Positions 9,175 through 64,000 of a stretch of 64,000 nucleotides of DNA are shown piece after piece. Made by a program: the position numbers and the translations under genes. Location: sequence record PV745554.1. The stretch is one strand, 5' to 3'. Below the pieces are notes generated by a model. That model saw only the letters and a list, made by a program, of their open reading frames with translations. It did not search any database and was not told the DNA's origin. Within the stretch, counting starts at the first letter, position 1. Every line of letters begins with the position of its first letter.

Positions 9175-9575
9175 TGCGCTTCGTCTCCCCAAACCAACCC
9201 TACTGCCGCTGCTGCGGCAAGCCGATCAAGAAGTTCACGCTCCGGCACTCGTTTGGCAAGAGCGAGTACAAGGACCATGGCTGGTCGATCTCGCGCACCG
9301 AGAAACCGATGTCCAAGGAGGAACTCCAGCGCGCGGTCAACGGCCGGATCATCTCGTTCACCTGGGACCACGAGACGACCTACGACGCCAACTACGAGCC
9401 GATCCGCACGAAGACCTTCATCGGCGAGGCCAACGTCTGGGACGGCGAGACCTACGAGGCGCAGTTCTTCTGCACCATGCGGTGCGCCGCCGCGTTCGGG
9501 GAAATGGCCGCCCGTGAATATCCGGGCCTCCACACCCAGACCTACGCTGACGCCATGAAAAAGAGGGAGGGCTAA
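9174..9575 (+). CDS. hypothetical Cys-motif protein
   Basis: CRCCG near N-terminus, FCTMRCA near C-terminus. Confidence 0.75.
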   Translation: MRFVSPNQPYCRCCGKPIKKFTLRHSFGKSEYKDHGWSISRTEKPMSKEELQRAVNGRIISFTWDHETTYDANYEPIRTKTFIGEANVWDGETYEAQFFCTMRCAAAFGEMAAREYPGLHTQTYADAMKKREG

Positions 9576-38166: not shown

Positions 38167-38711
38167 ACATCCTGCAAGACCTCCTCGCTCAGCCCGAGCA
38201 CATGACCGACGCCTATGCGTCCTGCATCTCGATGCGCATCGGCGACACCCTGGCCAGCCCCAAGCGTCAGGACCTCTTCGACCTCGCCACGACGCTGACG
38301 AGCATCTCCCACGCCATGCTGGCCCAGGCCCCGCAGGCGACCCGCGACGCCATCATCCACGACAAGGCCGACATGGGTGACCCGATCATGGCCGCCTTCC
38401 GCCTGGGGCAACTCTCGATGGCCGGCGAGATCATGGGCTACGAGGCGACGCGCCGCGCGGACGACGACATCATCGACGTGGTGAAGGCCAACCTCGGCGT
38501 GCTCTGCGACATCCGCGAGGGCCGCAACACGCCGTCGGAACTGGCGATGCAGTTCGGCATGACCGGCAAGGAACTGAAGGTGCTGGTCCGGGTGCTGGAG
38601 CACAAGGGCCTCGTCGTCACCGTCACCAGCAGCACGCCGGGCGTCTACGAGGCGCGCCTGACGCCGCTCGCCCATTCGATCCTCGACATGCTGAAAGAGA
38701 AGGCCGCATGA
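38163..38711 (+). CDS. protein with C-terminal MarR-like winged helix
   Basis: TPSELAMQFGMTGKELKVLVRVLEHKGLV...ARLTPLA. Confidence 0.8.
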   Translation: MNILQDLLAQPEHMTDAYASCISMRIGDTLASPKRQDLFDLATTLTSISHAMLAQAPQATRDAIIHDKADMGDPIMAAFRLGQLSMAGEIMGYEATRRADDDIIDVVKANLGVLCDIREGRNTPSELAMQFGMTGKELKVLVRVLEHKGLVVTVTSSTPGVYEARLTPLAHSILDMLKEKAA

Positions 38712-50995: not shown

Positions 50996-52780
50996 ATGAC
51001 CTTCTACCCCATGGAGGACCGGGCCAAGGCCCGCTCCGTTGTCACCAACCTGCTGGACCTCCAGCGCGAAGCCGTCAAGGTCAGCCGCCAAGGTCTAATC
51101 CTACCGCCTGAGCGCAAGCAGTTGATCACCCAGTTGACCGAGACCGAGGATCACACCCGCTGGGTTGACCTGCTGGGTCAGTTCGCCGATCGCGTCCAGA
51201 CCGATCACCTGAGCCGTCTGAAGCCGATCGCCAAGGACGACTTCAACGCCTTCTGCGAGTACGTCAATCCCGACGAGCCGCCGGCCTCCAAGTGGCACGT
51301 CTTCCTGACCGGCACGCTCCAGGAGATCGAGAACAACCCCGAGCTTGAGCGCTTCGTGCTCAACTGCCCGCCGGGCCACGCCAAGCCGCTGGACGTCGAC
51401 ACCGAAGTGCTGATGGCTGATGGCGCCTGGAAGCGTCTGGGCGACATCCAGGTGGGCGACTACGTGGTGGGCGAGAGCGGCGCGCGCTGCAAGGTCACCG
51501 CCGTCCATGAGCAGGGCGACCTCGACACCCTGAAGATCACCACCGCCCACGGCCGGCAGATCATCGCCGCGCCCGACCACTCGTTCCGGGTCGGTGACGG
51601 CTGGAAGCCGGCCGGCAAGCTGCGTCCGGGTGACGCCCTGTCCGTCGTCGGCGCCGCCAACCTCAACTACGACGCCAGCGGCAAGTCGATCGACCACTTC
51701 GAGCTTGCCGCCTACCTCCAGGCCAAGGGCGGGCGCTCCTACTTCCACCGCGTCCACAAGAGCGGGCCGAAGACCTACCGCAACGTCTATCTGTGGACGT
51801 CCGACCACCGCGAGGCCAGCCAGATCAGCACGTGCCTCAAGCGCATGGGCGTGGCCTTCAAGGGGCGGCTGGCCAAGACCGAGAAGGTCTGGAAGATGCG
51901 CCTCTCGACCGAGTGGGGCGACGCCCTGGCCGAGGAGTACGGCCTGGACGCCAAGATCGACGCGCGTCGTGTTCCGGCCTTTGTCACGAAAGGCGACGAG
52001 GAGCAGATCGGCCGCTACCTGTCGACCCTGACCTCGCTGGCCGGCGAAGCTCCCGAGCGCTACACCATCCCGCGTCTGGTGCTCTACTTCAAGAACCCCG
52101 ACTTCGCCACCGACGTCCAGCGCCTGTTCGCCGCCGTCGGCGTCAACGCGCGCATCGAGCCGCGCAAGACCGGTCGCACCCGGCTGCACATCTCCGGCGC
52201 CGATCTCGAAGCCTACTTCGCCGCCGGCCTGACCTACACCGGCCCCAACGCCGACAAGCTGCCGGCCAAGCGCGCGGCGTTCCCGACCGCGCCCTCGACG
52301 CTGGCCGATCACGTCACCTGGATCGAGCCGCATGGGGTGCGCCCCTGCCGCTGCCTGACGGTCGAGAACGAGCACACCTTCATCGCCCAGGGCGTGGTGG
52401 TCCACAACTCGACCTACGCCTCGCGCCTGTTCGTGGCGTGGCGCCTGGGCCGCGATCCGCGCCAGAAGATCATCGGCGGCGGCCACTCCCAACGCTTCGT
52501 CGAAAACGAGTTCAGCGGCAAGATTCGCAACCTCGTGCGGACGCCCCAGTTCAAGGACGTCTTCCCCGGCGTGGTCATCGACCATGCCACCTCGGCTAAG
52601 GACATGTGGGCGATCGCCGGGCACGGCGGGCAGTATGCCGCCAAGGGCGCCGGTCAGGCCATCCACGGTCTGCGCGCCAACTTCGTCTGCGTCGATGACC
52701 CCTATCCGTCGATCCAGAAGGCCGAGAGCGGGGCCTACCGCGAGGAGCGCTCTGGGCGAAGTTTTGTGGGACTACTATGA
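50996..52780 (+). CDS. terL: terminase large subunit, ATPase part with intein (truncated by frameshift)
   Basis: Walker A PPGHAK|ST split by the intein; Walker B FVCVDDP; frame closes 12 codons after AYR. Confidence 0.9.
   Translation: MTFYPMEDRAKARSVVTNLLDLQREAVKVSRQGLILPPERKQLITQLTETEDHTRWVDLLGQFADRVQTDHLSRLKPIAKDDFNAFCEYVNPDEPPASKWHVFLTGTLQEIENNPELERFVLNCPPGHAKPLDVDTEVLMADGAWKRLGDIQVGDYVVGESGARCKVTAVHEQGDLDTLKITTAHGRQIIAAPDHSFRVGDGWKPAGKLRPGDALSVVGAANLNYDASGKSIDHFELAAYLQAKGGRSYFHRVHKSGPKTYRNVYLWTSDHREASQISTCLKRMGVAFKGRLAKTEKVWKMRLSTEWGDALAEEYGLDAKIDARRVPAFVTKGDEEQIGRYLSTLTSLAGEAPERYTIPRLVLYFKNPDFATDVQRLFAAVGVNARIEPRKTGRTRLHISGADLEAYFAAGLTYTGPNADKLPAKRAAFPTAPSTLADHVTWIEPHGVRPCRCLTVENEHTFIAQGVVVHNSTYASRLFVAWRLGRDPRQKIIGGGHSQRFVENEFSGKIRNLVRTPQFKDVFPGVVIDHATSAKDMWAIAGHGGQYAAKGAGQAIHGLRANFVCVDDPYPSIQKAESGAYREERSGRSFVGLL
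51386..52408 (+). mobile_element. intein (341 aa), class-3-like, with degenerate LAGLIDADG endonuclease
   Basis: Starts with Pro (PLDVDTEV), ends VVHN before Ser+1; block F CRCLTV; LAAYLQAKG and YLSTLTSLAG motifs. Confidence 0.9.
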
Positions 52781-53525
52781 CTTGCATTACTTCAAACGGA
52801 AGCGCTCCGAGTGGAAGTACCAAAGATTTACTTTGGTTTATCAACAACTTGCGGACGCCGCCTCGGACACGTCGATCGCGTCCAAGTTCCAGACCTACCA
52901 GCACCTGCCGCACCTGGACCCGAAGGTCCTCAAGGCGCGCATGGACGCGGGGCATGTTGACGATCGCGGCCGGCCGATCCCGGACCGCAAGGAGCACTTC
53001 CGCCGCATCGTGACCTCGGTCGACGCGGCCCAGAAAAAGGGCGCGCGCAACGACTACACGGTCGTCCAGGTGTGGGGCGAGACCCACGATCGCAAGCACT
53101 ACCTGATCTACCAGGAGCGCAAGAAGGTCGAGATCAACGACCTGATCGAGATGGTCGAGCGCATCTCCAAGCGCTTCGACGTCGACTCCATCCTGGTCGA
53201 GGACAAGGGCAACGGCACCGCCTACATCCAGGCGCGGGGCCAGACCGACAACCAGCGGCGGCTCGCGCCGGCCCCGATCGAGGCGATCCAGGTCCCCAGC
53301 ACCTACTCCAAGGAGTTCCGCTTCAACGAGGTCATCCCGATGATCGAGGCCCAGGAGGTCTACCTGCCCGACAAGGCGCCGTGGCTCGACCTCTTCATCC
53401 GCGAAGTCGGGCAGTTCCCCGAAGGCGCCCACGATGACCAAGTCGACGCCATGACGCAGTACCTCCGCTGGGCCAAGTCCAAGCGCACGCGGTTCGGCGC
53501 GCGCAAGGTCGGCTCGATGGGCTGA
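52749..53525 (+). CDS. terL: terminase large subunit, C-terminal RNase H-like nuclease part (in +1 frame)
   Basis: LGEVLW...YQQ...TSVDAAQK...NDYTV...ILVEDKGNG...HDDQVDAMTQ; no clear start of its own. Confidence 0.88.
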   Translation, partial: ALGEVLWDYYDLHYFKRKRSEWKYQRFTLVYQQLADAASDTSIASKFQTYQHLPHLDPKVLKARMDAGHVDDRGRPIPDRKEHFRRIVTSVDAAQKKGARNDYTVVQVWGETHDRKHYLIYQERKKVEINDLIEMVERISKRFDVDSILVEDKGNGTAYIQARGQTDNQRRLAPAPIEAIQVPSTYSKEFRFNEVIPMIEAQEVYLPDKAPWLDLFIREVGQFPEGAHDDQVDAMTQYLRWAKSKRTRFGARKVGSMG

Positions 53526-53551
53526 TTAACCATCTTCGTTCACCCTGTCCG

Positions 53552-53588
53552 GGCCTGTTAACCTTAACACAACGAGGGTTAACAGGCC
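53552..53588. repeat. inverted repeat with TTAA motifs downstream of terL
   Basis: GGCCTGTTAACC...GGTTAACAGGCC. Confidence 0.75.
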
Positions 53589-53716
53589 AGGGACCCATCG
53601 AAATTAACCCTTGGGGACCCAGGGAAATCATCAGCCGGGGACCCTGCCAAATTCAACGCTGGGGACCCACCAAAATCATCCCTCGGGGACCCTAGCAAAT
53701 CGTGGCTCGGGGACCC
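53589..53716 (+). repeat. six GGGGACCC motifs with exact 24-bp period
   Basis: Copies at 53589 (AGGGACCC), 53613, 53637, 53661, 53685, 53709, each followed by AAAT. Confidence 0.92.
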
Positions 53717-53737
53717 TGGCAAATCAAGGAGCCGGCG

Positions 53738-53971
53738 ATGGCCGAACTCATGAGCCTGCTGTTCAACCTCGCCCCGTTCCTGCTGCTGGCGATCGTCGTC
53801 TACCACGTCCTGGAGGCCTTCTGGGCGGTCTGCCTGTGGGTCTACGGCCTGCGTACCCTGTGGAAGCTCCACCGCGACGACCTGTGGGAGGCGCTGAGCC
53901 TGGAGCGCGCCCTGAGCCCGTTCACCCATCACCGGGACATGAACGGCAACCTGCCGCGCCCGCCGACCTGA
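53738..53971 (+). CDS. small membrane protein
   Basis: ATG after AAGGAG; hydrophobic N-terminal half. Confidence 0.7.
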   Translation: MAELMSLLFNLAPFLLLAIVVYHVLEAFWAVCLWVYGLRTLWKLHRDDLWEALSLERALSPFTHHRDMNGNLPRPPT

Positions 53972-54043
53972 TGCCCCAAGTCACGGACTGTAGGTTTCAT
54001 GACAAGGTGGATTATTCCACAACGAAATCAAAGGCTTATCGCC

Positions 54044-54292
54044 ATGTCATTCCGCGCGTTCCTCCACGACCTCGCCGTCCGTTTCGTAGTTTTGGGGTGG
54101 ATTTTTGCCCAAAAACCCCAGAAATGGGCTCCAAAAGGGCATAATTTTCAGCCCATCCCGCCGGCCCAGGTCGAGCGGCAGGACCTCCGGGGGCGCGTGC
54201 TCCTCCTGAGGAGCTTCGGCGTCCTCGCCGCCGCATGCACAACCATGGGCCTGTGTCAATACCTGCTCTGGCGCCGCGCGGCCATGTCATAG
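54044..54292 (+). CDS. possible small membrane protein
   Basis: Two hydrophobic stretches; atypical codons. Confidence 0.4.
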   Translation: MSFRAFLHDLAVRFVVLGWIFAQKPQKWAPKGHNFQPIPPAQVERQDLRGRVLLLRSFGVLAAACTTMGLCQYLLWRRAAMS

Positions 54293-54339
54293 ACTAGGGC
54301 TTTCGTGACGACCTCACGTTTACGTTACCGGATAACCCC

Positions 54340-54495
54340 TTGCCGCACCTGCTCTTCTGGCTCTCGGCCGCCTGCATCGCCCTGGCCTGGGTGATCTGGG
54401 CCGCCGCCCGGCTGATCCGCCGCGATCGCCAGCGCCGCGCCGCTGGAGCGCGCCTGGGCCGGCGCACCGCAGCCGCCCATATGCGCCATATCTGA
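54340..54495 (+). CDS. possible small membrane protein (absent from ORF track)
   Basis: TTG start; PHLLFWLSAACIALAWVIWAAA then Arg-rich tail. Confidence 0.5.
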   Translation: MPHLLFWLSAACIALAWVIWAAARLIRRDRQRRAAGARLGRRTAAAHMRHI

Positions 54496-54541
54496 GCCCT
54501 TATCGCCCTTTAGGGCTCAGATACGCGACATTACGGCCCTC

Positions 54542-54700
54542 TTGACGCCCCCGCGTTCTGAGGAACACGGGGGCGTTTTGACGTCGGCGCATTTCAGACT
54601 TGACGCGCGAGCATTTCAACGCCGGAGCGTTTTGACGCGGGCGCATTTTCGATTCAACGCGCGAGCGTTTTGACGTCCGAACGTTTTTCAACTTGACGTC
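54542..54700 (+). repeat. degenerate array of TTGACG/TCAACG-containing units
   Basis: TTGACG at 54542, 54578, 54600, 54632, 54670, 54693; units end GC(A/G)TTT. Confidence 0.75.
54545..54580 (+). terminator. terminator-like hairpin
   Basis: ACGCCCCCG..GTTC-TGAG-GAAC..CGGGGGCGT then TTT. Confidence 0.55.
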
Positions 54701-54725
54701 GTTTCATTTACCACGAGCGCCTTAG

Positions 54726-54952
54726 GGTTAACCGCCGAGCCTGGGAATGGTTAAGGCCCGTTAACCATGTTTGTTAACCCTCAGGCCGTTAACCTATCAC
54801 CCGTTAAGGTTAACGCACCCCGGCCATTAACCCTGAGCGTGTTAAGGTTAACACCCCGTTAAGGTTAACAATTAAGGTTAACGCCCCCGGTAACCCTGCC
54901 GCCGTTAAGGTTAACAAACATGGTTAACGGGCCAGACCGGCGTTAACCTTAA
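54726..54952. repeat. dense TTAA cluster
   Basis: 19 TTAA in about 225 bp; TTAAGGTTAA five times plus one reverse copy; one perfect TTAA-N7-TTAA at 54848. Confidence 0.85.
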
Positions 54953-55011
54953 CGGCCAGAGCCCAGGCCCTACCGGGTATGACCTGCCGGCCATACCCGG
55001 TAGGGCGCGCC

Positions 55012-55269
55012 TCACGCGTCCGCGTCGGGCGACGCCGCCGCGCCGTATTCGTGGTCATTCCAGAGTATGCCCAGAATTTCGTCAGGCCCGAACGAAGGAA
55101 GCAAGGTTTGCAGGGCGTCGTATGTCTCGCGAAAGGCGCTCGCGTCGTCGTCCTGCATCCAAACCGACTCCTTGCCGGCCTTGTCGCGGAACGTGTACGC
55201 CGCGCCGTTCCCGTAGCTGTCGAGGGCGAAGCGTTCGCCCTCAGAAATGCGAATCGGTCCTGAATACAT
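55012..55269 (-). CDS. hypothetical protein
   Basis: ATG after GGAG on minus strand (MYSGPIRISEG). Confidence 0.7.
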   Translation of the reverse strand: MYSGPIRISEGERFALDSYGNGAAYTFRDKAGKESVWMQDDDASAFRETYDALQTLLPSFGPDEILGILWNDHEYGAAASPDADA

Positions 55270-55326
55270 GGGGCGATCTCCAAGGGCGCGGGGTGCGCCG
55301 ACCCGTGCAATCTGGACCCCCAATTC

Positions 55327-55392
55327 TTAACAAAACGTAAACGCCAGAGCCTTTTCCGTGTTTACGTTTTGTTAAGACTTTGCCGCTAGTGT
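55327..55392. promoter_or_regulatory. divergent pair of CtrA-box promoters
   Basis: TTAA-CAAAACG-TAAA (55327) and TTTA-CGTTTTG-TTAA (55361), then GCTAGTGT. Confidence 0.8.
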
Positions 55393-55432
55393 TCCTTGTG
55401 CCGGCGCATCCCGCGCCCTTGGAGCCTGGATC

Positions 55433-55726
55433 ATGTCCAACCGTTACGACGTTGAATATACAGACACTTTCGCAGGCGAGGCGAATTATTCTGGGGTCCG
55501 CCGCGCGGCCGTGACCATGCCAGAGCTAACCCATTATGGGTACGATGGCGGAACAAACTACGCCAAGGCGAACAAGGTTTTTAACCGCGAACTCATGAAG
55601 CGCGCCAAGGCCGCCATGGGTCTAACGGGCGTTCGCGGCGTTTCGGCCGCGCACGGTGACGGGCTGGAATTTCGGCCCTATAGGTCCGCGACGGTGCTTT
55701 TCGTGACCTATCGCGACGCCGACTAG
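55433..55726 (+). CDS. hypothetical phage protein
   Basis: EYTDTFAGEANYS...RAKAAMGLTG motif. Confidence 0.8.
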   Translation: MSNRYDVEYTDTFAGEANYSGVRRAAVTMPELTHYGYDGGTNYAKANKVFNRELMKRAKAAMGLTGVRGVSAAHGDGLEFRPYRSATVLFVTYRDAD

Positions 55727-55887
55727 GCAAGCCGCCCGGCGCCCTCCAGAGGACGCTGGGCGAACGCTTGCCCAGCGCGTTAACCATGTTTTTGAAAAGC
55801 GCCCAGCCCCGCCGTAGCGCCCCTACGGTTCGAAGAGCCCGGCCCTGCCGGTCCTGCCGGCTACAGGTCCAATCTAGCGGCCAATCC

Positions 55888-55963
55888 TTAACAAAACGTA
55901 AACGCCAGAATCTTTTTCGGGGGCTTTCGCGTTTACGTTTTGTTAAGAAATAGGGTCTAGTGT
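55888..55963. promoter_or_regulatory. second divergent pair of CtrA-box promoters
   Basis: Near copy of 55327-55392; boxes at 55888 and 55932. Confidence 0.8.
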
Positions 55964-56011
55964 CCCTCTTGTCGGGGCCACCCCCGGCGCTCTTTGACAT
56001 TGTGAGGCAAC

Positions 56012-56200
56012 ATGATTCCCTCTGAAGTTCTGAATCCGCGCGAGCACTGGACTCCCGTCGCCTCGCGCGAGGAAGCCGAAAAGATCGCCGCGCGCTGCAC
56101 CGAAGGCGACCCCGTCGGCCGCTACTACGTCGAGGAAAAGGGCGCCGGCTACGCTGTCGCCTATGACGACGAGGCGGGCGAATTCGTCGCCTACCTGTAA
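56012..56200 (+). CDS. small hypothetical protein
   Basis: ATG after GAGG. Confidence 0.75.
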   Translation: MIPSEVLNPREHWTPVASREEAEKIAARCTEGDPVGRYYVEEKGAGYAVAYDDEAGEFVAYL

Positions 56201-56228
56201 ACCTTTTGTTAAGACCTGACCTCTAAAC
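56198..56228 (+). promoter_or_regulatory. CtrA-box promoter
   Basis: TAAA-CCTTTTG-TTAA-N10-CTAAAC. Confidence 0.8.
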
Positions 56229-56262
56229 CGGGGTCAGGTTCAACCCCTGGAGGCCCTGCCCC

Positions 56263-56649
56263 ATGCCCAACCCCGGACTCTTTCGCGCCATGGCCAAAGC
56301 CGCCAAGCCGGTGATTAAGGCCTATCACGCCGACTTCGAAATTCACGACGCCAAGGTGATTCACGGCCTAAAGGACGGCGATGTCATCTTGTGGGCGCCG
56401 GACGCGCACGGAACGACTCTTATCGTCCTGGCGCGGGCTGGACGGCCCAACCATCGCGCCGCCGAACACTTCGAAGCCGCCAAGGCCCGCAACGCCCCCG
56501 CGTGGTTTGTCGCGTCGCTGTACCATGACGGCGAGTCGGGTCACTGGAGCCTTTCGCCGGCGCCGGACGCGCCCGAAATCGTCGCCCGCTTCGCCGAACA
56601 AGCCGCCCGCGACACCGCCCCGGACCCGGTGCGCGAGCTACACCTTTAA
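56263..56649 (+). CDS. hypothetical protein
   Basis: ATG after GGAGG. Confidence 0.8.
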   Translation: MPNPGLFRAMAKAAKPVIKAYHADFEIHDAKVIHGLKDGDVILWAPDAHGTTLIVLARAGRPNHRAAEHFEAAKARNAPAWFVASLYHDGESGHWSLSPAPDAPEIVARFAEQAARDTAPDPVRELHL

Positions 56650-56676
56650 CCTTTTGTTAAGACTTGACCTCTAAAC
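56646..56676 (+). promoter_or_regulatory. CtrA-box promoter
   Basis: Perfect TTAA-CCTTTTG-TTAA-N10-CTAAAC. Confidence 0.88.
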
Positions 56677-56711
56677 AGGGGTCAAGTCCAACCCCCTGGA
56701 GGCCCTGCCCC

Positions 56712-57251
56712 ATGTCCGTTATCGAAACCGCCAACCTCTCGCGCGGCCGTGTTCTCACCGTCGAAATCGACGACTGCGCCCAAGAGCCCTACGCCGACGA
56801 CAAGGGCGTGCGAATCGTCGTCCTGCATCGCCATTGGACGAACCCCGCCGCCGGCCTGCTGGACTCGGTCGAGGACGTTCAAGCCTTCGAGGCGCAGAAC
56901 GCCGCGCCCGACTCTGAATGGGCGATCTTTGAGCTATGGGTGATGGACCATAGCGGCCGGACCTTCAAGGCCGGCGCGCTGGGCGCCGGAAACCCGTTCG
57001 GCGCCGGACCCTACGCCCAATGGGATAGCGGCCGGGTCGGAGTCATCGCCCTGGCGCGCGCCGAGTGGCCCGCCGCCGACCTCAAGACCGCCCAAGGCGT
57101 CGCCGACACCTACGGCGCATGGGCCGAAGGCGAGGTTTACCAATTCGTCATTTCGAACCGCCGGGGCGACGTGCTCGACTCGTGCGGCGGGTTCTACAGC
57201 GTCGCCGAAGCCCTGGCCGCCGGCCGCGACGCCGCCAAGGTGAAAGCGTGA
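56712..57251 (+). CDS. hypothetical phage/plasmid protein
   Basis: WDSGRVG...W..GEVY...DSCGGFY motif. Confidence 0.8.
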   Translation: MSVIETANLSRGRVLTVEIDDCAQEPYADDKGVRIVVLHRHWTNPAAGLLDSVEDVQAFEAQNAAPDSEWAIFELWVMDHSGRTFKAGALGAGNPFGAGPYAQWDSGRVGVIALARAEWPAADLKTAQGVADTYGAWAEGEVYQFVISNRRGDVLDSCGGFYSVAEALAAGRDAAKVKA

Positions 57252-57442
57252 GAGTCGCCCGCGAAAGCTTCGCCGTGTTCTGGACCCGCCCCGGCTGGCG
57301 CGTCCAGTTTCACGCCGACATGAAACGGGCGCTGTACCCGACCGCCAAGGCCGCCGCCGACGCCTTCGCCGCCATGTTCCCGGCTGATCAGGTCAAGAGC
57401 GTGCGCGACGGCTCCGGCCGCTTCCTGGCCTTCAAGCGCTAG
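57248..57442 (+). CDS. small hypothetical protein
   Basis: GTGA overlap. Confidence 0.65.
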   Translation: MRVARESFAVFWTRPGWRVQFHADMKRALYPTAKAAADAFAAMFPADQVKSVRDGSGRFLAFKR

Positions 57443-57447
57443 ACCAG

Positions 57448-57482
57448 ACGCCCCGGAAAACTTTTCCGGGGCGTTTACTTTT
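57448..57482 (+). terminator. Rho-independent terminator
   Basis: ACGCCCCGGAAAA-C-TTTTCCGGGGCGT then TTACTTTTT. Confidence 0.75.
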
Positions 57483-57505
57483 TGTTAAGGAATGGCGTCT
57501 AGTGT
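57474..57505 (+). promoter_or_regulatory. CtrA-box promoter
   Basis: TTTA-CTTTTTG-TTAA-N10-CTAGTGT. Confidence 0.8.
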
Positions 57506-57550
57506 CCCTCTTGCCGCCGGGCAATCCCGCCCGGCCTTGGAGTTCTTCCC

Positions 57551-58069
57551 ATGCCGGAATTTGTCCTAGATACGTCGGGCCAAGTCGCCCCGCCCGCCGC
57601 CGCCAAGCTTTGGCCGCACCCCCTGGCCTGGAATCAGTTGAGCGATTTTGCTCAAGGCTACATCGAGGCCCTGTTTTTCACCGAGTCGTCGCCGGCCTAT
57701 GACCGCGCCGAATGGTTCGGCGCCGAGTGTCAAGAGGCCCTGGAGGAAGGCACGGCGGACGGGAACATTCCGGGCGATGTCGGATTCGCCGACCTCGCGC
57801 CCGCCACCCTGGCGCGCATCGTCGCCGATTGCGCCGACTTCCAACGCCAGCACGCCGACGCCCTGGCCAAGGCCTATGACCACGGCGGCGCGTCGGGCGA
57901 CTATGACGACGCCGCCGCCGGCCGTGATTATTGGTATACCCGCAACGGCCATGGCGTCGGGTTCTGGGATCGCGGACTCGGCGCGATCGGTGAGGCCCTG
58001 AGCAAGGCCGCCCGCTACAGCGAGCAAAACGCCTCTTTCGAGGATGACGAAAAGGTCTATCTCTCTTAA
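57551..58069 (+). CDS. hypothetical phage protein
   Basis: GRDYWYTRNGHGVGFWDR motif. Confidence 0.85.
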   Translation: MPEFVLDTSGQVAPPAAAKLWPHPLAWNQLSDFAQGYIEALFFTESSPAYDRAEWFGAECQEALEEGTADGNIPGDVGFADLAPATLARIVADCADFQRQHADALAKAYDHGGASGDYDDAAAGRDYWYTRNGHGVGFWDRGLGAIGEALSKAARYSEQNASFEDDEKVYLS

Positions 58070-58097
58070 CCTTTTGTTAAGACTTGGCCTCTAGGGT
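58066..58097 (+). promoter_or_regulatory. CtrA-box promoter
   Basis: Perfect TTAA-CCTTTTG-TTAA-N10-CTAGGGT. Confidence 0.88.
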
Positions 58098-58161
58098 CAG
58101 GTTGTCCCGGCGCCGGGGCTGGAACCCCCGGCGCGTCCATTCCGTGAAAGGAATCCATACC

Positions 58162-58908
58162 GTGTCTTTTGGTCAATTCTCCGCCGACGCCCGCGCCCCG
58201 CTGTCGAAATCCGCCATGCTGGACGCCCTCCCCGCCGCGCGCCGTGACGCTCTGGTCAAGTCCAGCAAGCCGGCGCGAAACACGCTCGATTACACAACCG
58301 CCGACGGCGTGCGCCGCGTGCGCTTGCATGACACCGACGTTTTGACGTTCCACGTTAACGGCGCCGTCGAGATCAACACGGGCGGCTGGAATACCCTAAC
58401 CACGCGCGACCGAATCAACACGTTCGCCCCGCCTCACGTGCGCGTCTACAGCGACAAGGGCCGCGCCGTGGTTCGCGCCTTGCCGGCCGGTGACGGCGCC
58501 GTCACGTGGTCCAGCCCCGCCGCGTCCAAGCCGTTCGCCAAGCGCGCCACCGTTCACCCGGACGGCCGAATCGAAGTGGACGCGACCGTCAAAGAACTGG
58601 AGGCGATTCCTAGCCTCATCCGCCGCTATCTGGAGGCCTTCAAGGCCGGTTTCCCGTTCAACTCGTCGGGTGACCCGTGGATGACGCCCGGCGCCCTTGT
58701 CGCCCCGGAAACCGCCCTTGACTGGCTGGGCGCCGACAGCGGCAAGCCGTACCTGTTCGACTCGATCCTGTTTCACGCCCATGTCGCGGCCGGCCTGACC
58801 GAAGAGGGCGCGGCGTTCTACATGCGCGAGGCCGCCCGGCGCGGCGTCGACAAATTCAATCTCGGCCGCATCCGGCGTTACCTCAAGCGTTGCCTTCGCG
58901 AAGCCTAG
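58162..58908 (+). CDS. hypothetical phage protein
   Basis: GTG after AAGGA; LHDTDV...INTGGWNTLTTRDRIN motif. Confidence 0.8.
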   Translation: MSFGQFSADARAPLSKSAMLDALPAARRDALVKSSKPARNTLDYTTADGVRRVRLHDTDVLTFHVNGAVEINTGGWNTLTTRDRINTFAPPHVRVYSDKGRAVVRALPAGDGAVTWSSPAASKPFAKRATVHPDGRIEVDATVKELEAIPSLIRRYLEAFKAGFPFNSSGDPWMTPGALVAPETALDWLGADSGKPYLFDSILFHAHVAAGLTEEGAAFYMREAARRGVDKFNLGRIRRYLKRCLREA

Positions 58909-58917
58909 ACCCTGCCC

Positions 58918-58950
58918 GGCCGCGCCGCCCTGGCGCGGCCTTTCTTTTCC
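58918..58950 (+). terminator. Rho-independent terminator
   Basis: GGCCGCGCC-GCCCT-GGCGCGGCC-TTTCTTTT. Confidence 0.8.
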
Positions 58951-58959
58951 GTGTACGCG

Positions 58960-58992
58960 TTAACTTCTTGTTAAGACTTTACGCGCTAATGT
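58960..58992 (+). promoter_or_regulatory. CtrA-box promoter
   Basis: Perfect TTAA-CTTCTTG-TTAA-N11-CTAATGT. Confidence 0.88.
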
Positions 58993-59044
58993 CCCCTTGC
59001 CGCCGGGCAATCCCGCCCCGCCGCCTCTCAAAGGATCGCCACCC

Positions 59045-59665
59045 ATGGCCCGCCTGATCAAAGCCAAGTCCACCGCCGAACAAGCCGAAGCCCTGGCCAG
59101 CCTGCAAAAAATGCTCAAGCCGGGCGACACGGTTTATCCCGTGCTGCGCCACGTCTCGACCTCCGGCATGATGCGAGTCATTGACCTGATTATCCCGGTC
59201 ACGGTCGAGACGTCGCAAACCCTGCCGGCCGGCGCGCGCGGCTTCAAGATCGGCGTTCAAGCCTATGCGACCCCGCCGGAGCGCAACGCCCCCCGCGCCT
59301 TCTCAACCGGCGCCGTGACGGCTTTCGACGCCGACACCGTGACCATTGCCTATCAGGCCACCGCCGACGGCCGGGGCGAGGCGGAATCGGTGACGTGGCC
59401 CCGTGGTCAGGTCAAGTTCTACGCCAAGAGCAAGCGCCCTGGCGTCCGCTCGATCGGCTGGCTTGCCGCGAAGGCTATGGGCGACACTTTCGACGCCGAC
59501 CGCCAAGGAATCAAGGTCGGCGGGTGCGGTATGGATATGGGCTTTCACCTCGTTTACAGCCTGGGCCGCACGCTCTGGCCAAAGGGAACGAAAAAGCCGC
59601 ACGGCTCGCGCAACGGCGAGCCCGACCGCGACGGCGGTTATGCGCTGAAACATTCCTGGCTTTAA
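59045..59665 (+). CDS. hypothetical phage protein with internal insertion
   Basis: LRHVSTSGMMRVI...GCGMDMGFHLVYSL motifs. Confidence 0.85.
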   Translation: MARLIKAKSTAEQAEALASLQKMLKPGDTVYPVLRHVSTSGMMRVIDLIIPVTVETSQTLPAGARGFKIGVQAYATPPERNAPRAFSTGAVTAFDADTVTIAYQATADGRGEAESVTWPRGQVKFYAKSKRPGVRSIGWLAAKAMGDTFDADRQGIKVGGCGMDMGFHLVYSLGRTLWPKGTKKPHGSRNGEPDRDGGYALKHSWL

Positions 59666-59694
59666 CTTTTTGTTAAGAGTTTAGCCGCTAATGT
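59662..59694 (+). promoter_or_regulatory. CtrA-box promoter
   Basis: Perfect TTAA-CTTTTTG-TTAA-N11-CTAATGT. Confidence 0.88.
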
Positions 59695-59743
59695 CTCCTT
59701 GCGGCCGGGCAATCCCGCCCGGCCGCACCCGGAACCAAAGCCC

Positions 59744-60016
59744 ATGACCCGCGCTCAAGTCCTCGCCGAAATCGCCGCCCTCGAAGGCGTCCAAGCCCGT
59801 TTCGTCACCGAAACCAAGGAATTCCGCGTCACCCTGACTTTTGGCCCGCTTCCCATGGGGCGCGGCTCGCAAGCCTGGATGAACGCCCGCCGGGAAGCCG
59901 TCGCCTACTACACCGAAGACAAGGCCGACGCCCTGGCCACCGCCCGCGACATGTCGGCCCGTTGGGTCGCCATGACCCCGGCGCAACGTGATCACCTGTA
60001 CCGCAACGCCGCGTAA
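59744..60016 (+). CDS. hypothetical protein
   Basis: ATG downstream of the promoter and leader hairpin. Confidence 0.75.
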   Translation: MTRAQVLAEIAALEGVQARFVTETKEFRVTLTFGPLPMGRGSQAWMNARREAVAYYTEDKADALATARDMSARWVAMTPAQRDHLYRNAA

Positions 60017-60044
60017 CCCTTCGTTAAGACCCGGCCGCTAGAGT
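60013..60044 (+). promoter_or_regulatory. CtrA-box promoter
   Basis: GTAA-CCCTTCG-TTAA-N10-CTAGAGT. Confidence 0.75.
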
Positions 60045-60080
60045 GGCCGGGTCATCAACCCCCCGCAAGGATCGCCCGAC

Positions 60081-60359
60081 ATGCGCAAGCCCCTGACCCA
60101 AGAGCAAAAGGCCCGCCGCCGCGCGCAACGCCGCGCCGCCCGCCTGACCTGGAGCGACGAACGCCGCGCGGCCGAATACGCCCGCCAATCGCGCTTTTTC
60201 CTGATGATCGCCGAACGCGCCCAAGTCGCGGGCGACCGCACCGAAGCCGCCCGCCTCGCCACCGTCGCGCAACGCAAGGTGACCAACTGGCGCATGGCGG
60301 AGGCGTGCGCCCGCATCAACGCCCTTTCCGTCCACGCCTGGGCCGCTGTCGCGGCCTAA
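60081..60359 (+). CDS. basic helical hypothetical protein
   Basis: ATG after AAGGA. Confidence 0.75.
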   Translation: MRKPLTQEQKARRRAQRRAARLTWSDERRAAEYARQSRFFLMIAERAQVAGDRTEAARLATVAQRKVTNWRMAEACARINALSVHAWAAVAA

Positions 60360-60376
60360 CTGGAGAACCCCGCCCC

Positions 60377-60700
60377 ATGCCCCCGATGACTCACCCTCAC
60401 GCCCTGGCCTTGATCGCGCTCGCCGAAAAGGTCCTGCCCCTGACCAAGCTGCACCCGCTGGACCAAAGGGCCGCCGCTGTCGATCTTATCGGCGACCTCT
60501 ACAGCCTCGCCGACTCCATCGACGCCACCGCCGGCCACTTGGTCGCCGCTGTCAACGGCGCCTTGCGCGACGGCTGCGAGGGTTACGCGCCCAAGAGCCG
60601 CGCCGCCGCCGCTGTCGCCACCGTCCGCGCCGACGAACTGCGCTCCGCCCTGGAGGCGTACACCGAAGCCGCCGCCCTGGCCCTGCCGAAGGTTGCCTAA
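60377..60700 (+). CDS. hypothetical protein
   Basis: ATG after GGAG. Confidence 0.7.
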   Translation: MPPMTHPHALALIALAEKVLPLTKLHPLDQRAAAVDLIGDLYSLADSIDATAGHLVAAVNGALRDGCEGYAPKSRAAAAVATVRADELRSALEAYTEAAALALPKVA

Positions 60701-60701
60701 C

Positions 60702-60845
60702 GTGACCGCCCTGCAATGCGCCGGCTTCGCCGCTCAACGTCGCGGCGTCAAATGGTGGAATAACCCGCATCCGGCCGGCTCTCCCGCCGCCTATCAATGG
60801 GATCAAGGCCACACTTTCGCCCGCCGCTCGATCACCGCCGCCTAG
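60702..60845 (+). CDS. Rmf/CrpP-fold-like miniprotein (absent from ORF track)
   Basis: 47 aa: GFAAQRRGVKWWNNPHPAGSPAAYQWDQGH fits G..A...G.....NP.......W..G. Confidence 0.65.
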   Translation: MTALQCAGFAAQRRGVKWWNNPHPAGSPAAYQWDQGHTFARRSITAA

Positions 60846-60858
60846 GAAAGGCCCCGAC

Positions 60859-61440
60859 ATGTCGCAACGCTACCGCCTCGCGCCCGCCGCCCGCGTCTCC
60901 AAGGCGCTTTCGGACCTGCTTTATGCGGCGTCGGAAGTCGTCGCCACGGCGGCGCAATATGAGACGACGCCCGCCGGTCAAACCAAGCTCGCCAAGATGC
61001 GCGGCGACCTGATCACCGAAAGCGCCGGCGCCCTCGTGCGCAAGCCGCCTAGCGCCGTCCTCGCAACCCTCGTTTGGGTTGTCGAAATGGCGCAAGCCCG
61101 CGCCACGGATGCGGATTTCAATTCCGCCCAAGAGGGGCTGGACGAACACGACGCTCTAGCGTTCGTCGCCGATTGGCTGGAAGCCGAAGGCGTGGACGTG
61201 ACCGTCATTCGCAACGCCGCGCCCTCGGCCGAAGCCTTGGCCGAACTCGTCGCCCGCCGCGACGCCGAACAAGAGGCGCTGGACGCCCTGGAAGCCGTCC
61301 AGAGCCCCGAAGACCCCGCCGACGTGATCACCGACGCCTTGCGGGGCTATCTGGGCGCCACGCTGGCGGAAAACCACGCCGACGACGTGCTAGACGCCCT
61401 CACGCGCGCCGGCTTCCAAATCACCCGCAAGGAGGCCTAA
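60859..61440 (+). CDS. hypothetical protein
   Basis: ATG after AGGAAAGG. Confidence 0.8.
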   Translation: MSQRYRLAPAARVSKALSDLLYAASEVVATAAQYETTPAGQTKLAKMRGDLITESAGALVRKPPSAVLATLVWVVEMAQARATDADFNSAQEGLDEHDALAFVADWLEAEGVDVTVIRNAAPSAEALAELVARRDAEQEALDALEAVQSPEDPADVITDALRGYLGATLAENHADDVLDALTRAGFQITRKEA

Positions 61441-61445
61441 AGCCC

Positions 61446-62273
61446 ATGACCAAAGCCCGCCACGCCTTCGAGGCCGTCCGCGTCGAATCGGCCGGGGAGT
61501 CGATCCTTGATCGCTTCACCGTGACCAAGAAACGCACCGCCGAACAAGCCTATGACGCGGCCGAAGCCCTTTGCGAGGCCGCCCGCGCCCTCGCGCCGGG
61601 TCAAGCCCATTTCGTCCGCGAAGTAAACGCGCCGGGCGAAGAGACGCCCGCCCAAGCCCTGGACCTCGCCAGCGTCTCGACGGCCGACCTCATCGCCGAA
61701 CTCTACCGCCGCCCGGTCGCCGTCTGTGTGTTCGAAGGCGTGGACGTGCTCGCCGAAGCGGGCGGCGCCTTCGATGACGCCGACGACGCCGCCCAATGGC
61801 TGGCCAGCAAGTCCAGCTATATCGGCGACGCGATGAGCGGCGCCGGCTGGGACTCGGTGCGCTATCACCTGACCGCCGACGGCCGCGCCACCGACGAGGG
61901 CGACGACGAGGAAGAGCCCGCCGACGCCCTCCCCGTCGCCGTGACCCTGGAGCAAGGCGACGCCGTCCGCGTGGTCGGGCGCTTCGCCACCGTGGGCGAA
62001 GCCGTCGATTTCCTGGCCTCTCCGATCCGCGATCAAGACGCCCTCGCCGCCGGCCGCTACGGGATCGACGCGCCGCACGGCGTGGCCAGCGACGCGGACG
62101 CCGTGACCCTGGCGAACAAGCTGGGCTTTCAAGTATTCCGCTCCATGGGGTCGGTCTACTACGCCCCGCCCGGCGTGGCGGTTTCCGGCAACGCCGACGG
62201 CCGGGGCTGGAAAGGCGGTTTCGACGACATCGCCGCCGCCGCCCTCGCCGCCCTGGCCACCGTCGACCCCTAG
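61446..62273 (+). CDS. acidic hypothetical protein
   Basis: ATG after AGGAGG. Confidence 0.75.
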   Translation: MTKARHAFEAVRVESAGESILDRFTVTKKRTAEQAYDAAEALCEAARALAPGQAHFVREVNAPGEETPAQALDLASVSTADLIAELYRRPVAVCVFEGVDVLAEAGGAFDDADDAAQWLASKSSYIGDAMSGAGWDSVRYHLTADGRATDEGDDEEEPADALPVAVTLEQGDAVRVVGRFATVGEAVDFLASPIRDQDALAAGRYGIDAPHGVASDADAVTLANKLGFQVFRSMGSVYYAPPGVAVSGNADGRGWKGGFDDIAAAALAALATVDP

Positions 62274-62462
62274 CCGCCTAAGTCATCATTCCTACCGTCT
62301 ATGACATGTCACGGGCTGAATACTTGGCCCGTGACGACTTCCCCTAGTAAAGCTCACGCCTGTTTTCGTGACATAGCGCAAGGAACTGAAATCGTTGGAA
62401 AAACTCCTAGAGGGTCACAAAGTTCTGGTTTGGCTGCTGCTGCTGGCGTGCCTCTGGCGCTT

Positions 62463-62495
62463 TTAACCCTTTGTTAAGACTTTACCCGCTAGGGT
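62463..62495 (+). promoter_or_regulatory. CtrA-box promoter
   Basis: Perfect TTAA-CCCTTTG-TTAA-N11-CTAGGGT. Confidence 0.88.
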
Positions 62496-62550
62496 GACTT
62501 TGCGGCCGGGCAATCCCGCCCCGCCGCCTTCCTTCTCTGGAGCCGCTACC

Positions 62551-62991
62551 ATGCAAACCGCTTCCGTGATTCTCCCCGCCCAAACCCTGGCCGGCGCCGA
62601 CCTTGGCCCCGTGCTGATGGTCTTCGCCCTGGAACTGTCGCAGCACTTCGGCGACGTCGCCCAAGCCCCGACCGTCGAGCGCTGGACCGATGAGGCGACG
62701 GGCGCCGAATTCGTCGCCGACTGTGTGGCGTTCACGGTGTCGGCGGACTGGACCGCCAAGGGCGGACGCATGGCGCGCCGCCTGGAGAACATGGCCGCCC
62801 GCTACGCCGCCCCGTGCGAGGCCCCGGCCCTGACCGTCCAGCACGCCGACGGCTCAACCGTCTACGTCGCCGCCCTGGAGGCCCTGGCGCGCCCTGCCCC
62901 GGTGCAAGGCCCCTCGCGCATCGCAGACCCGGCTTTCCTGCCCCGCCAGCGTGAGGACAAGGCCGCCCGCTTCGAGCGCCTGACCGCCTAG
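62551..62991 (+). CDS. hypothetical protein
   Basis: ATG after GGAG. Confidence 0.8.
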   Translation: MQTASVILPAQTLAGADLGPVLMVFALELSQHFGDVAQAPTVERWTDEATGAEFVADCVAFTVSADWTAKGGRMARRLENMAARYAAPCEAPALTVQHADGSTVYVAALEALARPAPVQGPSRIADPAFLPRQREDKAARFERLTA

Positions 62992-63015
62992 GCCCTGGCC
63001 TAGCCTCTCCCCTTG

Positions 63016-63048
63016 GCGCACCGCCTCGCAAGCGGTGCGCTTTTCTTT
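63016..63048 (+). terminator. Rho-independent terminator
   Basis: GCGCACCGC-CTCGCAA-GCGGTGCGC-TTTTCTTT. Confidence 0.85.
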
Positions 63049-63053
63049 GCGTA

Positions 63054-63086
63054 TTAACTTGTTGTTAAGAGTTTAGCTGATAGTGT
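63054..63086 (+). promoter_or_regulatory. CtrA-box promoter
   Basis: Perfect TTAA-CTTGTTG-TTAA-N11-ATAGTGT. Confidence 0.85.
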
Positions 63087-63136
63087 CTCCTTGTTGGCGG
63101 CGCATCCCGCGCCGCTCCTCTCTTGGATCGCTCGAC

Positions 63137-63529
63137 ATGGCCCGCCCTTCTGACCTGCTCAACGTCAACGCCGCCCGCGTCCTGGCTTGCCTCGAAGCCC
63201 TGGCCGGCGTCGTCAAGACCGCCCCGGAAGCCGACCGCGCCGCCTTTTCCTTCCTGCTGGACGCGGCCGAATTCGTCGCCTCCTGGCGCCGCAACCATAC
63301 GGAAACCGACCGTCGCCGCGCCTACGGTGCGGCGTGCGCGGCGCAAGCCCTGGCCCTGACCAATGCCTATCAGCCCGCGACCATGCAAGGCGGGGCGGTG
63401 CGCCGCGCCCTGGGCGCCTATGCCGCCGCCCTTAAGCTGCTGCTGGACGGCGAGCCGGTGCAAGCCGTGCGCGCGGCCGAAGGCGCCGCCCAAAGCGTGC
63501 GCGGGCGCTTCGCTAACACCCGCATCTAG
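63137..63529 (+). CDS. Ala-rich hypothetical protein
   Basis: ATG downstream of the leader hairpin. Confidence 0.75.
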   Translation: MARPSDLLNVNAARVLACLEALAGVVKTAPEADRAAFSFLLDAAEFVASWRRNHTETDRRRAYGAACAAQALALTNAYQPATMQGGAVRRALGAYAAALKLLLDGEPVQAVRAAEGAAQSVRGRFANTRI

Positions 63530-63561
63530 TAACCTTTTGTTAAGACCCCCTGGCCTATAGT
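63529..63561 (+). promoter_or_regulatory. CtrA-box promoter
   Basis: GTAA-CCTTTTG-TTAA-N11-CTATAGT. Confidence 0.8.
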
Positions 63562-63587
63562 CAGGGGGTCGCAAGGAGACACCCGAC

Positions 63588-63779
63588 ATGACCCGCCCCG
63601 GCCCCGCCTCGCTCCTCTCGCCCGCCGCCACCTTCTCGGCGCATAACCTGACCCTTCCGGGCGCTCGCCCTATGCCCCTGCCCAAGGCGCAAGGCCTGAC
63701 CTATGGCCAGTGCATCGCCCTGGGCGCGAGCCTGGGCTTGCTGGGCTTCCTCGCCTTGCGCGTGTTCGGTCTGGTCTGA
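63588..63779 (+). CDS. small protein with C-terminal TM helix
   Basis: ATG after AAGGAG; IALGASLGLLGFLALRVFGLV. Confidence 0.7.
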   Translation: MTRPGPASLLSPAATFSAHNLTLPGARPMPLPKAQGLTYGQCIALGASLGLLGFLALRVFGLV

Positions 63780-64000
63780 CCAGACCCCCGGCGCCCCCGG
63801 TCGCCTCGCGGTAGGGCTGTCCCATATTGAGACGGCCCTACCGGGGTAGTGTTTCTTTTTGGGACGAGGGACCCAAAGGCCCCCTACGTTAACCATTTTT
63901 GGCGGCGCCCCCCGGCGCCTCAGGATAGCATTGAACTTTTCGGTTGACATAATCAGACCCTCAGGCGAAGAAGGGCGCGTTCAGGCCGAGCGGCGCCCCC

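Follow-up and report, generated by a model that had tools for sequence, protein, structure and literature searches.

In phages of the phiCbK type, which carry long direct terminal repeats, each repeat contains a C-terminal fragment of the large terminase gene (terL), and the full-length gene is found solely where the unique region meets the right repeat (PMC3556154). In phiCbK itself the left physical terminus was mapped to terL codon 652 by tag ligation, and in Rogue the same terminus was seen as a coverage step (Gill 2012, PMC3556154). Given that the left physical end lies within codon 652, the sole complete copy of terL must therefore span the junction of the unique region and the right repeat. 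This junction is intact in all five phages for which the left terminus was placed within terL (PMC3556154), and no gap is predicted there. Terminal repeats are known to collapse during assembly and the genomes in that study were 're-opened' (Gill 2012, PMC3556154); in artefacts of this kind, pseudo-circular contigs are re-opened and extended by hand, and the errors cluster at the repeat boundaries (PMC3556154). The closest described gene to the one considered here is gp331 of CcrRogue (AFU86813.1; JX100814.1, 211446-214178), annotated as an intein-containing terminase large subunit precursor.

Here, we analyze terL in the right-hand 64 kb (64,000 nucleotides, hereafter the window) of the genome record of Caulobacter phage BL64 (PV745554.1; 224,634 bp), to which the window is 100% identical over terL. 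Window positions are record positions minus 160,634. According to its record, BL64 is a phiCbK-like giant siphophage of the species Poindextervirus rogue with C. vibrioides CB15 as host, an entry that implies plaque isolation on CB15. Its terL is the same gene in the same species as CcrRogue gp331 (98.9% nucleotide identity) and shares with it the intein, the location relative to terS and the repeat start within codon 652. However, the gene is 2733 bp long and intact in CcrRogue, and is likewise 2733 bp in RBC8, RBC63, CcrBL10 and phiCbK, whereas in BL64 it comprises 2530 bp, with codons 585-652 lost and the remainder frameshifted. We conclude that this gap is very likely an artefact of the assembly or finishing of the BL64 record and not a feature of a viable phage.

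terL as deposited in BL64

In the BL64 record terL has no CDS annotation, and the locus tags jump over 336 and 337. The region reads as follows, in window coordinates.

50996..51385, + strand: terL N-extein, codons 1-130, ending in the Walker A stretch PPGHAK (from the open reading frame; the boundaries K130/P131 and N471/S472 are from the CcrRogue and phiCbK annotation and Gill 2012)
51386..52408, + strand: intein of 341 codons, P131-N471, with a LAGLIDADG-like insert (Pfam Intein_splicing, E 6.6e-10, Hom_end_hint and LAGLIDADG_3; CcrRogue has a mat_peptide 'intein' at the homologous place)
52409..52746, + strand: terL C-extein to codon 584, Walker B included, the last part ahead of the gap (phrog_38 positions 319-410 and phrog_4758; collinear with relatives to 52746)
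52746..52747, no strand: seam at which 203 bp are missing, equal to CcrRogue record positions 213197-213399 (alignment and blastn breakpoints; annotated repeat_region start)
52747..52780, + strand: continuation of the upstream reading frame, here out of frame (RSGRSFVGLL), as far as the TGA at 52778-52780 (translation of the open reading frame)
52747..53525, + strand: 3' part of terL, which opens at the second base of codon 652 and runs to the stop, with the RNaseH-like nuclease domain (Pfam Terminase_6C; phrog_5573; phrog_38 positions 484-711)
52747..52878, + strand: remaining right-hand part of a low-GC3 island, Rogue codons 652-695 (GC 0.42-0.50; GC3 0.64-0.70 in Rogue, phiCbK, BL57, Bajun and CcrSC versus 0.86-0.91 in Gurke and Colossus)
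52747..64000, + strand: right terminal repeat as deposited, 11,254 bp (record annotation; the homologous CcrRogue terminus is at 63912)

The upstream part is a single open reading frame (50996..52780, 594 aa) that runs through the N-extein, the intein and the C-extein as far as Walker B (VCVDD...AYREE). Both ATPase Walker motifs are present, Walker A as PPGHAK split by the intein and Walker B with VCVDD at 52685-52699. The nuclease half lies in another frame from 52749 to 53525, opens with ALGEVLWDYYDLHYF and matches Pfam Terminase_6C (E 4.7e-14). The RNaseH-like nuclease domain is thus present, in a frame that differs from that of the ATPase part as deposited. The first-pass annotation, made from the letters of the window, had described a frame that closes at 52780 and a nuclease half that continues in a different one from 52749; the open reading frames and the Terminase_6C match bear this out.

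Absent from the BL64 record are the coupling motif (motif III/C, MTRFH) and the remainder of the ATPase domain after Walker B. Pfam returns no ATPase-domain family match even for the intact CcrRogue C-extein, and PHROGs were used instead. The intact C-extein covers phrog_38 positions 319-711 continuously, whereas the BL64 fragments cover only 319-410 and 484-711 and leave approximately 411-483 uncovered; ahead of the gap, the matches to phrog_38 and phrog_4758 span 52409-52746. Within the TerL family this missing block is conserved, and the distant TerLs of Microbacterium, Staphylococcus, Lactococcus and Yersinia phages align across it. A search of solved-structure sequences with the intact C-extein as query gave nothing at E 0.01 or below.

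The predicted intein has Hint splicing blocks and a homing-endonuclease insert and is located in the Walker A loop (P-loop). Its C-terminal end reads ...VVVHN/S at 52394-52411, that is, His-Asn and then the nucleophile. The N-terminal residue is Pro and not Cys or Ser, a non-canonical start that has already been treated in Gill et al. 2012 (PMC3556154).

The 203-bp gap and the start of the terminal repeat

Alignment with five close relatives shows a single clean gap of 203 bp between 52746 and 52747 (...GAGGA/GCGCTC...), and the blastn breakpoints match to the base (52746 corresponds to position 38197 and 52747 to position 38401 of L009). A deletion joined at GAGCGC, as opposed to a simple frameshift, had been proposed from BL64 alone; the alignment confirms the type of lesion and places the actual breakpoint within a few bases of that site. 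The missing bases encode approximately 68 residues, CcrRogue 585-652. In CcrRogue the segment translates as EVRTWFFGDVGSRLLPLAKVFLIMTRFHEEDLTG...YDPENDVLGR, contains LIMTRFHEEDL and is followed by ALGEVLW, in good agreement with the peptide that the first-pass annotation had predicted to be missing (IMTRW/FH, ending in DPLGR..GExLW). Its central claim, that terL lacks the motif-C segment, holds as well, given that LIMTRFHEEDL lies within the lost residues. The loss is not a multiple of three and shifts the frame, with 9 out-of-frame residues before the TGA at 52778-52780.

A blastn search with the CcrRogue segment matches 32 records of the phage collection, and BL64 is not among them over its full 224,634 bp, which extends to the entire record the earlier observation that the segment is found nowhere in the window. 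No microhomology was found at the BL64 join and no direct repeats flank the segment in CcrRogue. Repeat-mediated slippage is ruled out because such flanking repeats are lacking.

The C-extein is in one collinear piece in 24 of the 26 closest records (at least 87% identity), the only exceptions being BL64 and RBC11. It is intact in RBC8, RBC63, BL57 and CcrBL10 from the same laboratory, and likewise in CcrRogue from Gill et al. With the region in one piece in 24 of 26 records, the suggestion that close homologues might naturally lack the segment finds no support.

None of the public sequencing runs contains BL64, the best run sharing 0.31 of the words, and in the four public runs examined the contigs come from relatives and not from BL64. 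In runs X1 and X3, which belong to one study, contigs at least 99% identical to the window lose their match at 52746 and at 52747, where they proceed into the beginning and the end, respectively, of the missing segment. This shows that an intact junction exists in near-identical phages, and the support that it lends to an artefact concerns relatives of BL64.

The right edge of the gap coincides with a landmark. Window position 52747 (record 213381) is where the annotation begins the right terminal repeat. The bases at record position 1 of BL64 are the same as those from 52747 onwards, and the CcrRogue record likewise opens with this repeat base; the homologous repeat start in CcrRogue is 213400, which is terL nucleotide 1955 in codon 652. 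The 3' part of terL sits in the terminal repeat and is thereby duplicated at the left genome end; tblastn places a second copy at record positions 1-4 of relatives. On sequence grounds BL64 therefore appears to have the phiCbK-like architecture, with a repeat start homologous to the mapped terminus and a 3' fragment of terL duplicated at the left end. What it loses is exactly the final 203 bp of the unique region, up to the repeat junction. A random real deletion would end on that base with a chance of roughly one in thousands. With the gap edge exactly on repeat base 1, the join therefore involved either a free left DNA end or a seam in the record.

Origin of the gap

The junction of the unique region and the right repeat is the site at which repeats collapse, contigs end, ends are trimmed, and the genome is re-opened or the repeat appended. 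We infer that the bases were lost in silico, or while the library was prepared or the genome finished, and not in the phage. In the BL64 record the unique part stops 203 bp early and runs straight into repeat base 1, a join that deletes codons 585-652, which encode the coupling motif together with the last part of the ATPase domain, and shifts the frame. Several routes are conceivable: a contig may have fallen short of the junction before the repeat was added to it, contig ends may have been trimmed too far, or the layout may have passed through a chimeric long read that joined one of the abundant free left ends to a sheared end close by. The real BL64 very probably carries an intact 2733-bp terL like that of CcrRogue.

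The ends of the record are irregular in other respects and look as though they had been finished by hand. The right end of BL64 (64000) lies 88 bp past the site homologous to the CcrRogue right terminus (63912). The 11-mer GCGGCGCCCCC ends at both sites, 63912 and 64000, as two copies 88 bp apart. For BL64 the incorrect copy of the 11-mer was probably taken as the repeat boundary, as if placed by pattern search, and the last 88 bp of the deposited right end are probably an over-extension. Misplaced ends are the usual error with collapsed repeats; a 203-bp loss in an essential gene is a more damaging variant.

The left and right repeat copies are annotated as identical, with lengths of 11,252 and 11,254 bp, and differ by a 2-nt indel in an intergenic position (window 62294-62295 versus record 9547/9548). 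The left copy is without AC after record position 9547; the right copy includes these bases and matches CcrRogue in length. Because the copies differ by these 2 nt, the right one is not a plain paste of the left, and plain copy-paste of the left repeat is weakened as the whole explanation. Given the same difference, the junction may have been inside an assembled contig.

Sister genomes from the same laboratory (RBC8, RBC11, RBC57 and RBC63) were obtained from pooled PacBio sequencing and HGAP4 assembly, with duplicate contig ends trimmed manually in Artemis (PMC12195562). The method is described there for these sister genomes, and BL64 is mentioned in a figure legend only. RBC11 (PV231355.1), which belongs to the same species, has a terL gap that ends at the same repeat start, that is, at the first repeat bases at its record position 1; the gap measures 175 bp as opposed to 203 bp in BL64. 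The RBC11 terL is annotated as two hypothetical proteins in a record without repeat_region annotation. At the RBC11 junction, which is garbled in contrast to that of BL64 (gacgtt-gcag-gctcgg; L003:2770-2790), 4-5 upstream bases are retained and 2-3 repeat bases are gone. The terL of RBC57 (PV231353.1) has a 1-nt frameshift.

Elsewhere, the BL64 consensus is sound, given that the indels upstream are small and the lone isolated 1-nt indel is intergenic. The 15.6 kb upstream are 97.6% identical to Rogue, with a largest indel of 27 bp and the single isolated 1-nt indel between annotated Rogue genes. This comparison for broken genes used the blastn indel list, stop-to-stop comparison of open reading frames being too noisy in a GC-rich genome. 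Among the three options offered in the first-pass annotation, assembly error, the first, is strongly favoured by the coincidence with the seam, the irregular record ends and RBC11.

Against an artefact, we can name no standard assembler step that deletes 203 bp at this place, and the occurrence in two independent records of gaps that end at a physical DNA end could fit a real end-joining process. The free left end (repeat base 1, made by terminase) would then have fused in vivo with a broken end lying 203 bp ahead of the right repeat, and the resulting TerL-null genome would be abundant in the lysate and complemented by intact co-infecting genomes. Such a deletion would account for a right edge that is exactly a known physical DNA end, for a join without microhomology or flanking repeats, as end joining would give, and for a second isolate, RBC11, with a gap of another size and the same endpoint; the 2-nt difference between the repeat copies also suggests that the junction may be assembled and not pasted. 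However, TerL is essential for the phage. A genome that lacks the coupling motif and has its nuclease out of frame is unable to package itself and therefore should not dominate a plaque-purified, high-titre lysate, and being 203 bp shorter gives it no obvious advantage by which to become the consensus. Furthermore, the garbled RBC11 junction, with its extra lesion of 2-3 nt, resembles a poor consensus more than a clean in vivo join, both cases come from the pipeline of one laboratory, and the 24 intact records of the 26 closest include 454 assemblies of virion DNA. Hence, we consider a real deletion unlikely. Going further, the BL64 and RBC11 gaps could both be real, recurrent joins of the left end to a nearby break, with the terL terminus as a hot spot for TerL-null, helper-dependent genomes at high frequency in lysates of giant Caulobacter phages, a proposal that we regard as more doubtful still. 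If the gap were real, its interest would lie in the terminus-linked generation of defective genomes.

That the missing segment is supplied in some other way, through a separate exon, trans-splicing or a TerL that works without it, is highly improbable: the phage must package its DNA and terL already has one protein-splicing element, but the segment that matches 32 records is absent by blastn across the whole of BL64, both flanks stay collinear right up to the join, where nothing resembling an intron or intein is inserted, the family profile has the segment as part of its conserved core, and the loss is not a multiple of three.

The gene, its intein, the terminal-repeat architecture and the position of the terminus have already been published, and the gap itself is best regarded as a flaw in two database records. 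The BL64 and RBC11 records are without an intact essential gene, so that TerL-based phylogeny, completeness scoring and packaging-type prediction will mis-score both genomes. The trap is a general one: when a repeat starts inside a gene, the sole intact copy spans the very junction that is disturbed by assembly or hand-finishing.

The low-GC3 island at the terminus

Directly after the seam, over 52750-52870, the GC content of BL64 is 0.42-0.50, compared with about 0.65-0.72 around it. The first-pass annotation had noted this as approximately 100 AT-rich nucleotides with rare codons at an abrupt codon-usage break. The drop in GC is confirmed but the stretch is not foreign, being part of an island that is also found in intact relatives. 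In intact genes, a low-GC3 island of approximately 330 bp covers about Rogue codons 589-695 (CcrRogue L001:3265-3585) and straddles the terminus at codon 652, with a GC3 of 0.64-0.73 versus 0.85-0.97 in the remainder of terL. The onset appears abrupt in BL64 because only the part to the right of the seam, the right-hand third, remains. A foreign patch or co-conversion tract is ruled out by the homologous island in the intact relatives examined.

Rogue, phiCbK, BL57 and Brevundimonas phage Bajun all have the island, and so does the distant CcrSC, in which the annotated start of the repeat falls at the codon homologous to terL codon 652. It is absent from Colossus and Gurke (GC3 0.86-0.91), and the Colossus terminus has been mapped downstream of terL (Gill 2012, PMC3556154). 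In the relatives examined, the island tracks whether the terminus lies in terL. Synonymous-site identity is not raised inside the island, and it is the composition that is conserved and not the sequence. The island may reflect how the DNA behaves physically around the packaging cut, for example how easily it melts or bends. The low-GC3 island is not mentioned in Gill 2012 (PMC3556154), and as a by-product of the present analysis it represents a modest piece of real biology at the terL terminus. Just 3' of terL and within the terminal repeat, the non-coding stretch at 53560-53730 contains six GGGGACCC motifs with a spacing of approximately 24 bp.
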